Assembly: GCF_006345805.1 (NCBI RefSeq)
Contig: NC_042997.1
Coordinates: 188,356,001 to 188,420,000, forward strand
Direction: 5' to 3'
From: Octopus sinensis
Taxonomy: Eukaryota
DNA: 64,000 bases
The notes under the pieces are model-generated. The model was not told the origin of the DNA and made no database searches. It saw nothing but the letters and a program-made list of their open reading frames with translations. The translations under genes were made by a program, and so were the position numbers. Position 1 is the stretch's first letter, and the number at the start of each line of letters is the position of its first letter. This document shows positions 57,601-62,312 of this stretch, in pieces.

Positions 57601-60600
57601 AATGTACTTGGATTCCAAATCCCTATTCCTTCACATTATATATATATATATGTGTGTGTGTGTGTGTGTGTGTGTGTGTGTGTGTGTGTGTGTGTGTGTG
57701 TGTGTGTGTGTGTGTGTGTGTGTGTGTGTGTGTATAAAACCTTTTAGCATTCAGATTACTGAATCAAATGTGATGTTTGCTTATTCACATCTTTTAAAAT
57801 TAATCCTGTATTATCTTGTAGCTTTGAGATTTTGAGGATGTGATTGTTTATTTTTAGATTAACACTGTAGGGTAGGTGTGAAAGGCTGGATCTGGCCAGT
57901 TTGGACATAAAACAGGTAGAATATTTGGGCCAGATCTGGCTGCTAATGGGACATATATAGATATATAGACTCACACACAAATATATACACACAAACAATT
58001 AATTATATGCATGTATAAGCAATATATGTTCAGTCTGTAGAAGAATCTATCACCATACCTGTACTTGGGGACCATACTGATTGTTCATGTTCATATTCAT
58101 GTTCATATTCATCTGTTGCTGCTGGTTCTGTTGCTCTTGGATAGCTACCATGCTGGCTGTGGCTGTGGCTGTAGCTGTGGCAGTGGCAGCCGCTGCCACC
58201 AGAGCAGCAGACAGCGCTGCTGGAGCAGCTGGGTATTCATTATTGCCGGACATCTGGGAAGGGTTAGAACCTGGAGTATTTGGAGTTGGAGGGTAACCAC
58301 TGAAAAGCAAAAATAGATTTTAAGGCTTCAGAAGAGCAAAGAAAAAAATTCTATTATATTCCAATACAAAAGCTAATTCCACAAATGTTGACCATATTCC
58401 TTATCTAGAGAAAGCTCAAAAAGAGTTTTTTAAAAACTATATGTATATTTAGAGACTGAGGAGTTTGAATGAACTTTACACACACAAACACACAAGCACG
58501 AAAATTAATGAAACCCATGATTTTATTATTTCATGCTCAATGACATAAGTGTTCCTAAGATTTCTGATGGTGGGAGAGATGTCTGAAAAATATTCAAGCA
58601 CCACTGTAGGTCATAGATTTGCTAGTTAATAGAAAGGAAACAGGCATTTATACATAAAGCAATTTGTTCACTTTTAGTGATGGCCATGATGATGATGATG
58701 ATGATGATAATGATGAATTTGATGATAAAAAATATTTCATTTTTCTATAGGCACAAGGCCTGAAATTTGGGAGAAAAGTGGAGTAAGTCAACCCCAGAAC
58801 ACAATCGGTACTTATTTCATCAACCCTGAAAGGATGAAAGATGAACTTGAAATGTTAAGAGCAGAACAAATATCGCAAAGTGTTTTTTCTCCAATGCTCT
58901 AATGATTCCACCAGCAATTTTAGGGGAGGGAGGGTCAATTACATAGACCCCAGTTTTCAACTAGTATTTATTTTGTCAGCCTCAAAAAGATGAAAAGCAA
59001 AGTCAACTTCAGTGGGATTTGAACTTAGAGCATAAAGAACCAGAAGAAATGCCACTCAGTATTTTGACAAATGCACCAATGATTCTGCATTAATAACGAT
59101 AATAATAATTTTTTCAAGTCTAGGCACAAGGCCTGCAATTTTAGGGGTGGGGGTTAGTCGATTACATCAACCCTAGTGCTCCACTGGTACTTATTTTCTC
59201 AACGAAAGGCAAAGTCAACCTCAGTGGAATAATAACGATGATAATAATAAGCCATCTACTCGCAATACCAGAAGGCGCACACTCTCCTACCCTGGTGTAA
59301 TCTCCATGGATACAGGCATCCAGCAACAGGACCTCCGTAATGTCATGATGGACCGTGAAGTCTGGCATAGCATGGTAAATTCCATTGTCTCGAGCACGGT
59401 CGAACGATGATGATGATAATAATAATAATAATAATAATGATGATGATGATGATGATGGAACTGCAAGAATTCATCGCAGGGTTCTTGAAGCATGACCAGT
59501 AAAACAAATGTCACCTTAGCCTGCTGGCTGCAGACACTTTCCATCATACCCAGCAATATAAGCTGTGAGATTTAATACAACAACAATAATAATAATAATA
59601 TCCTACAGTATGATGAAATATAAACCTAACAATCAAAAGTATAAATAACATTTCATCACATATATTCATCATTAATCTTTCGAAAGAAACAAATGCACTT
59701 TATGTTTCAAGACTAGAAGCTTGTCTAACAGCAAGCCAAACAATACTGAAATAAATCATTAAATATAATTTAAGGGAAATATATATATAGCTCTGTATTT
59801 GAATAAATAGTTCAGACTAGACTGAAAACTTAATCCTTTGAGAAAACATTTCAAAGTTCAACACTTCTTAGGATTTATTGCAGAGTTAAAAAAACAATAT
59901 ATTTAGCATAAAATAAATAGTTCTCAAATATAAGCTAATTGGAAATGTAAAGAATTCAATGATTTGATGTTAGTGCCTTGAAAGTTTTATGTCTACAAAA
60001 GTCATTTCTATTCTACAATTAAACACTACTTACAACTTCATTAAAAAACACATTCACTTCATTTTATACATTGAAAATTAGAAATTAAATGAAAGCAGCC
60101 TATTCATAACGTACTGCATTTTCAAATAATTTTCAAACATACACACACACATTACATATCTGCAAATACTAACTAATTACTACTGGGAAATATTAACTAG
60201 CATTATACCTTACACAATAATTTAAACCATTAATTATATATGATAAAATCAATTTTATAAGAGACTCAAATTTTTAATACTTATATCACATACACACACT
60301 GAGATATGTATACACATACATACACATATGTTGATTCACTTTTTCAAGAGTAATTTAAACATGTTTAAAAAGTTTTCAGACTAAAATTTAACAAATTTTT
60401 CAAATGTTGCTAAATTCAAGATAATGTAATTTGAATGAATTTTTATATTTTAAATTAGTCTGCAGGCAATGATTTACAATGAATAAATAAACAAATTTAC
60501 AGTTAGTAGACATTTCATGCTTTTCAGTTTTGCTAACTTCCTTATGATAAACAGAAAATACTAAAAACATATCATGCACAAGAAAGAGAGATAAAGAGGG

Positions 60601-62312: not shown

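Follow-up and report, generated by a model that had tools for sequence, protein, structure and literature searches.

A probable additional coding exon in a mollusc ZMIZ gene, formed by partial tandem duplication

The stretch of DNA analysed here (64 kb in length, referred to below as the window) carries on its minus strand a clear orthologue of the ZMIZ/tonalli genes, which encode SP-RING transcription coregulators. Within this gene a short exon, termed A, resembles the beginning of the exon that follows it, termed B. We consider it likely that exon A is real and is translated as part of a mollusc ZMIZ (a tonalli/ZMIZ1-like SP-RING coregulator); it arose through an old, lineage-specific tandem duplication. 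The 5′ third of the module exon, which encodes a conserved 11-residue core and the remainder of the module ([DE]Y.AP.P.ALS.A) ahead of an Ala/Thr tract, was duplicated in tandem, and the copy gained a donor of its own, GC/gtgagt, exactly 99 nt in (a slash marks the splice junction throughout). A donor at this distance turned exon A into a symmetric phase 2-2 exon.

Splicing in of exon A would insert 33 residues and give the protein two tandem copies of a linear motif rich in Pro and Thr. Both copies would lie in a disordered linker that connects the N-terminal domain with the Ala/Thr tract, and the module may act there as a short linear docking or phosphorylation element; the benefit of doubling it would then be a higher valency of that motif. 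Exon A contains three TP dipeptides and one SP, and the module of exon B two TP, a content that makes proline-directed kinase or Pin1-type sites plausible. Neither K nor R occurs in this part of the protein.

The ZMIZ gene and the anatomy of exons A and B

Fourteen consecutive exons, A to N, were traced on the minus strand, from 62312 down to a stop codon at 39514, by six-frame reading and inspection of splice sites. The spliced product contains the PINIT-type Pfam domain GBD-like_ZMIZ1_ZMIZ2 (PF25527; E=3.8e-66, with the full model, 1-126, covered) and a MIZ/SP-RING zinc finger (Pfam zf-MIZ, PF02891; E=7.3e-22), the latter encoded by exons I and J. Its best protein matches, with E about 1e-249, are ZMIZ1-like and come from Haliotis (73% identity) and a chiton (68%); these top matches belong to other mollusc classes, at only 68-73%. 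Vertebrate ZMIZ1/ZMIZ2 and Drosophila tonalli are PIAS-like SP-RING coregulators that share the domain order of the window gene, namely the module, the Ala/Thr tract, a Pro-rich region, the GBD-like/PINIT domain, the SP-RING and a Pro/Gln-rich C-terminus ending DDLLSLF. The N-terminal exons lie beyond position 64000, and tblastn with the chiton protein gave no match in the window before residue 252. The introns of the gene are AT-rich, with many microsatellites and SINE-like repeats. Both this and the class of the top matches would fit a cephalopod origin, which is plausible. The features, all on the minus strand, are as follows, each with the evidence or measure attached to it.

62313..62342, minus strand: 3′ splice site upstream of exon A, pyrimidine tract tgcttttgtcttatttatttttcgttttag (82% pyrimidines)
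62214..62312, minus strand: exon A, putatively coding, copied from the 5′ third of B (99 nt, phase 2-2)
62206..62213, minus strand: 5′ splice site after exon A, TGC/gtgagtaa (6/9 match to CAG/GTRAGT)
58300..62213, minus strand: intron separating A from B, in which SINE-like fragments and microsatellites occur (3914 nt, 31% GC)
58203..58299, minus strand: duplicated part of exon B, its first base and 32 codons (97 nt; alignment, tblastn)
58059..58299, minus strand: exon B, with module, Ala/Thr tract and (NM)n (241 nt; phase 2 at entry, phase 0 at exit)
58155..58196, minus strand: Ala/Thr tract AAAATATATATATA inside exon B, counterpart of the human ZMIZ1 alanine-rich motif
53633..53854, minus strand: exon C (translation, splice sites, tblastn)
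52756..53001, minus strand: exon D (translation, splice sites, tblastn)
50277..50427, minus strand: exon E (translation, splice sites, tblastn)
48524..48659, minus strand: exon F, start of the GBD-like/PINIT domain (Pfam, tblastn)
47939..48149, minus strand: exon G (Pfam, tblastn)
46760..46865, minus strand: exon H (translation, tblastn)
45705..45859, minus strand: exon I, first half of the SP-RING (Pfam, tblastn)
43180..43247, minus strand: exon J, second half of the SP-RING (translation, Pfam)
42259..42419, minus strand: exon K (translation, tblastn)
42023..42160, minus strand: exon L (translation, tblastn)
40908..41494, minus strand: exon M, C-terminal region rich in Pro and Gln, including a polyQ run (translation)
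39514..39669, minus strand: exon N, which carries the stop codon directly after ...DDLLSLFDS (translation, tblastn)

The polyQ run of exon M (window 41230-41310) comprises approximately 26 glutamines encoded by a mixture of CAA and CAG; the orthologues that were inspected have no run of that length.

By position, exon B is the orthologue of the one module exon found in other animals, and only the first 40% of it is present as exon A, which sits 3.9 kb upstream. The acceptor of exon A reads ...cgttttag/TGGTTATCC and its donor CTGTTGC/gtgagt, while the acceptor of exon B reads ...gcttttcag/TGGTTACCC; both acceptors thus have the form ag/TGGTTA, in phase 2. The introns on either side of exon A are of phase 2, the phase of entry being taken from exon B and the orthologues since the exon upstream of A lies outside the window. 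On joining, the last GC of exon A and the first T of exon B make up an Ala codon. An uninterrupted run of about 25 T on the minus strand is found at window 62395-62424, some 90-110 nt ahead of the acceptor of exon A.

Exon A as a copy of the module

The first-pass annotation had described exons A and B as a tandem, same-phase duplication of a ZMIZ module exon, with purifying selection acting on both copies, and the comparison of the two bears out each of these points. In a protein alignment of the 33 codons of exon A with the first 32 of exon B, 22 of 33 residues are identical, with a gap of one codon. When the module of exon B was used as a tblastn query against the whole window, exon A was recovered at E=2e-12, with no further match below E=0.5; a third copy of the module was also considered for the segment 62313-64000, where tblastn found none. 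It might be supposed that two proline-rich stretches had come to resemble each other by chance or through low complexity, given that A and B are both rich in Pro, Thr and Ala and that the gene has other Pro-rich exons. Such an origin is effectively refuted by the alignment, the tblastn search and the simulation described below, and we give it a negligible probability: the likeness is collinear over 33 residues, includes identity of the first 11, and extends to the acceptor hexamer and the intron phase. It is scarcely more conceivable that exon A is an artefact of assembly, be it an uncollapsed haplotype or a mis-joined duplicate, because the nucleotide identity of A and B is only 69% and because only 97 nt are shared, between flanks that are unrelated.

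Within the identical stretch of 11 residues, 9 of the 11 codons differ, in every case at the third position and in every case synonymously. Counted by the NG86 method over the 32 aligned codons, synonymous differences amount to 18.5 and non-synonymous ones to 11.5, which gives pS 0.68 and dS about 1.75 (saturated), and pN 0.17 and dN 0.19. This single paralogous comparison, of A with B over 32 codons, supports the view that both copies are held by purifying selection on the protein. How far neutral change could have produced the same outcome was simulated by placing the 30 observed substitutions randomly on the B sequence, with bases drawn from the intron composition. At least 22 identical residues, without a stop, were kept in 5 of 200,000 trials (2.5e-5), and neutral decay of exon A is therefore very unlikely.

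These results bear directly on the idea that exon A is an unused pseudo-exon, that is, a relic of an intronic segmental duplication, which splicing would never include or would include only as noise. The failure to find an orthologous exon in the sampled loci of other species speaks for this idea. However, a neutral relic whose synonymous sites are saturated should have decayed to the composition of the intron, and exon A has not done so: its GC content is 61%, compared with 24-26% in the 500 nt on each side, and its 11-residue core is intact and its frame free of stops. In addition, the AG and GT of its splice sites are preserved in the correct phase. We therefore regard the pseudo-exon as improbable. 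An alignment with 12 orthologous modules points the same way, in that exon A retains all of the invariant or near-invariant positions (Y2, P3, P4, T5, P6, N7, P9, G10, A-L-S and A), which are seen across molluscs and nemerteans and, in part, in vertebrates. A translated exon under selection is by far the best reading of exon A.

Inclusion, skipping or exclusion of exon A

It had been proposed in the first-pass annotation that A+B and B alone are both in frame, that A alone shifts the frame, and hence that the two exons are not a mutually exclusive pair. Translation to the stop confirms this: A+B and B alone both run through to 39514, whereas A alone leads to a frameshift and a stop after about 23 out-of-frame codons. 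The mutually exclusive arrangement is accordingly rejected, since A adds to B and does not replace it. Whether exclusivity could be rescued by an acceptor inside exon B was also considered, but direct reading of the sequence reveals no AG there in the required phase. The mutually exclusive exons of Dscam1 and U2AF1 (exon 3/Ab) arise, like exon A, by tandem duplication; such pairs, however, typically keep the frame with either exon alone and lose it with both (or neither), which is the opposite of the frame logic of A and B. With tandem exon duplications in general (Kondrashov & Koonin 2001; Letunic et al. 2002; reviewed in PMC8373072), in which homologous exons stand side by side in the same orientation, exons A and B have in common a shared intron phase and purifying selection on both members. 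They depart from the typical case in that exon A represents only the first 40% of its parent and has a new donor, and in that the arrangement is additive and not substitutive.

What is left to weigh is whether exon A is included constitutively (or predominantly) or is a regulated cassette, whose inclusion depends on tissue or stage so that the protein has two copies of the module or one. The length of exon A is a multiple of three with symmetric phases (99 nt, 2-2) and its skipping is for that reason frame-neutral; this, together with the impossibility of A alone, favours the cassette, although a reading frame of this kind would allow skipping without demonstrating it. Exons added in a single lineage are often alternative, which also counts in favour of a cassette. 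Further, weak, encouragement comes from a pair of inverted arms of 72 nt (59091-59162 and 63743-63814; 78% complementary) that belong to a dispersed SINE-like element, lie in the introns flanking exon A and are adjoined by ATT/ATC microsatellites. These diverged arms could pair in the pre-mRNA and favour looping-out of the exon, but they are weak copies of a repeat found many times in the window, and they match each other only weakly. Nor are the splice sites of exon A any weaker than those of constitutive exons. Its acceptor (82% pyrimidines) is among the strongest of the gene, its donor (6/9 consensus) equals those of exons F, G, L and M, and both sites are comparable with those of the other 13 exons. 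No GCATG, PTB-type (UCUCU) cluster or Nova-type (YCAY) cluster occurs within 400 nt of exon A, and most tandem duplicated exons end up constitutive (PMC8373072). On balance, constitutive or predominant inclusion seems somewhat likelier than regulated skipping, at about an even chance overall, and the regulated cassette is a real possibility to which we give appreciably less than that. We would expect exon A to be present in at least a major share of the mRNAs.

The most far-reaching interpretation can be put forward only tentatively, as rather doubtful: exon A might be a clade-specific (probably cephalopod) regulated cassette that determines whether a developmental and neuronal coregulator carries a single or a double copy of a docking motif, itself deeply conserved and open to regulation by phosphorylation, beside the Ala/Thr tract known in its human counterpart as a disease hotspot.

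Occurrence, age and significance of the duplication

In ZMIZ1, ZMIZ2, tonalli and the other animals sampled there is one module exon, to which the window gene adds the 99-nt copy upstream. Among the best 120 protein matches (from molluscs, nemerteans, arthropods and vertebrates), the module occurs once ahead of the Ala/Thr tract in every protein except that of Tubulanus. The first-pass annotation had known of no such duplicate in vertebrate ZMIZ1, and the protein matches agree, vertebrate ZMIZ1/2 being single-copy for the module. The same is true of the gastropod, bivalve and bivalve-like loci that were searched, in which a single copy was found (L003, L007, L008, L009). For a chiton (L002) and an oyster (L003) this extends to the whole gene. 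The ZMIZ genes of Haliotis, Lineus, Gigantopelta and Biomphalaria exceed 100 kb, and two gastropods were sampled through ORF-anchored 10-kb flanks: a Gigantopelta-like gastropod (L008) and Elysia (L009) showed no second module copy in the 10-11 kb that precede the module exon, and an environmental contig of bivalve-like type (L007) showed none in the preceding 8.5 kb. A degenerate DNA pattern of the 10-residue core, applied to metagenome contigs, returned three bivalve-like exons, all single-copy. Isoforms differing by the module are not annotated in chiton, abalone, Gigantopelta, scallops, oysters, pulmonates or nemerteans, where the differences between isoforms lie elsewhere.

In ZMIZ1/ZMIZ2 and tonalli the start of the module exon agrees with that in the window gene to within one codon. 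The intron that precedes it shifts by one codon between lineages: the chiton (L002 34755) and the oyster (L003 29748) have cag/(C or T) TAY, with a Gly codon split as GG/N, and the window (58299, 62312), two gastropods and the environmental bivalve-like contigs (L005-L009) have ag/T GGN TAY. The strict 10-residue core is a feature of molluscs and nemerteans, in contrast to vertebrates, which have SYPGGPNAP and in which module and tract together read SYPGGPNAP...ADFTQPAAAA. The Ala/Thr tract that the module precedes is identical in 14 mollusc and nemertean proteins, and a related tract is present in vertebrates.

Two sequence states appear to place the duplication within the lineage of the window. 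Among the sampled species, 'GN' at its position is common to A and B only, as is 'YPA' (in the two bivalve sequences GG comes after YP), and this sharing fits a duplication within that lineage. Taken with the single copy in the other sampled loci, these derived states therefore place the duplication in the window's own lineage, after the split from the sampled gastropods, bivalves and chitons. Word-indexed searches and a full scan of 1.84 billion representatives recovered no annotated or transcript-derived ZMIZ protein of the window's clade. As to the age of the duplication, the only near-identical sequence recovered is an 88-aa ORF over exon B (P0200), which sits on a Logan contig of 906 bp (L004, SRR11869385) that ends before exon A. 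Compared with window 57850-58750, this contig encodes an identical exon B protein with 4 synonymous differences in 241 nt (exon B dS 0.077), and its match to the intron preceding exon B is about 86% identical. Set against 0.077 for exon B with a close relative, the saturated dS between A and B (1.75 or more) indicates that the duplication is old, and exon A should accordingly exist in related species. Exact look-up of the window ORFs over exons A and B in the ORF collection gave no match, and a composite query aimed at exon A orthologues, made up of an out-of-frame ORF over A, of A itself and of the beginning of B, returned only ORFs of the exon B type.

The exception mentioned above is the ZMIZ1-like protein of the nemertean Tubulanus polymorphus, which has two module-like stretches, SYHPPTPPTPRSN..MVNND and GYTPTPNAPPGSN..MVGGSND, both before the Ala/Thr tract, in one exon (L001 36134-36505) and in all annotated isoforms. 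The likeness between them is weak (E=0.012). If the doubling is real, it may be an independent, internal duplication, because both stretches lie within a single exon, whereas in the window gene the module is doubled by means of a separate exon A. Independence would, in turn, suggest recurrent selection on the dosage of the module.

The module is of interest on account of its position. It directly precedes the Ala/Thr tract, and the human counterpart of this tract, the alanine-rich motif of ZMIZ1, is rich in disease-causing missense variants and is the main hotspot of such variants in a neurodevelopmental syndrome (PMC12170594). With the module beside this tract, a natural contrast between one copy and two could help to show the role of a motif that is strongly conserved but uncharacterized. 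The case also offers a clean example of how partial duplication of an exon may give rise to a new, selected coding exon and thereby alter how many times a short linear motif occurs in the disordered part of a conserved coregulator. Tandem exon duplication is itself well known, and the additive in place of the substitutive arrangement is a minor variation upon it; the case covers one gene in one lineage. No paper mentioning the exon A duplication was found in a literature search.

Some other elements of the window may be noted. An Rfam scan of the window gave no match. A fragment of reverse transcriptase (Pfam RVT_1, E=8e-15) is located at window 19237-19755 on the minus strand, about 20 kb past the 3′ end of the ZMIZ gene, with more open frames adjoining it (18402-19233), and is probably a decayed non-LTR retroelement. 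A second dispersed repeat, judged by eye from the six-frame listing, occurs on the minus strand in several introns (53900-54100, 46998-47222, 56455-56695, 31213-31460 and 6178-6490); its core translates into a stretch of 29 residues.
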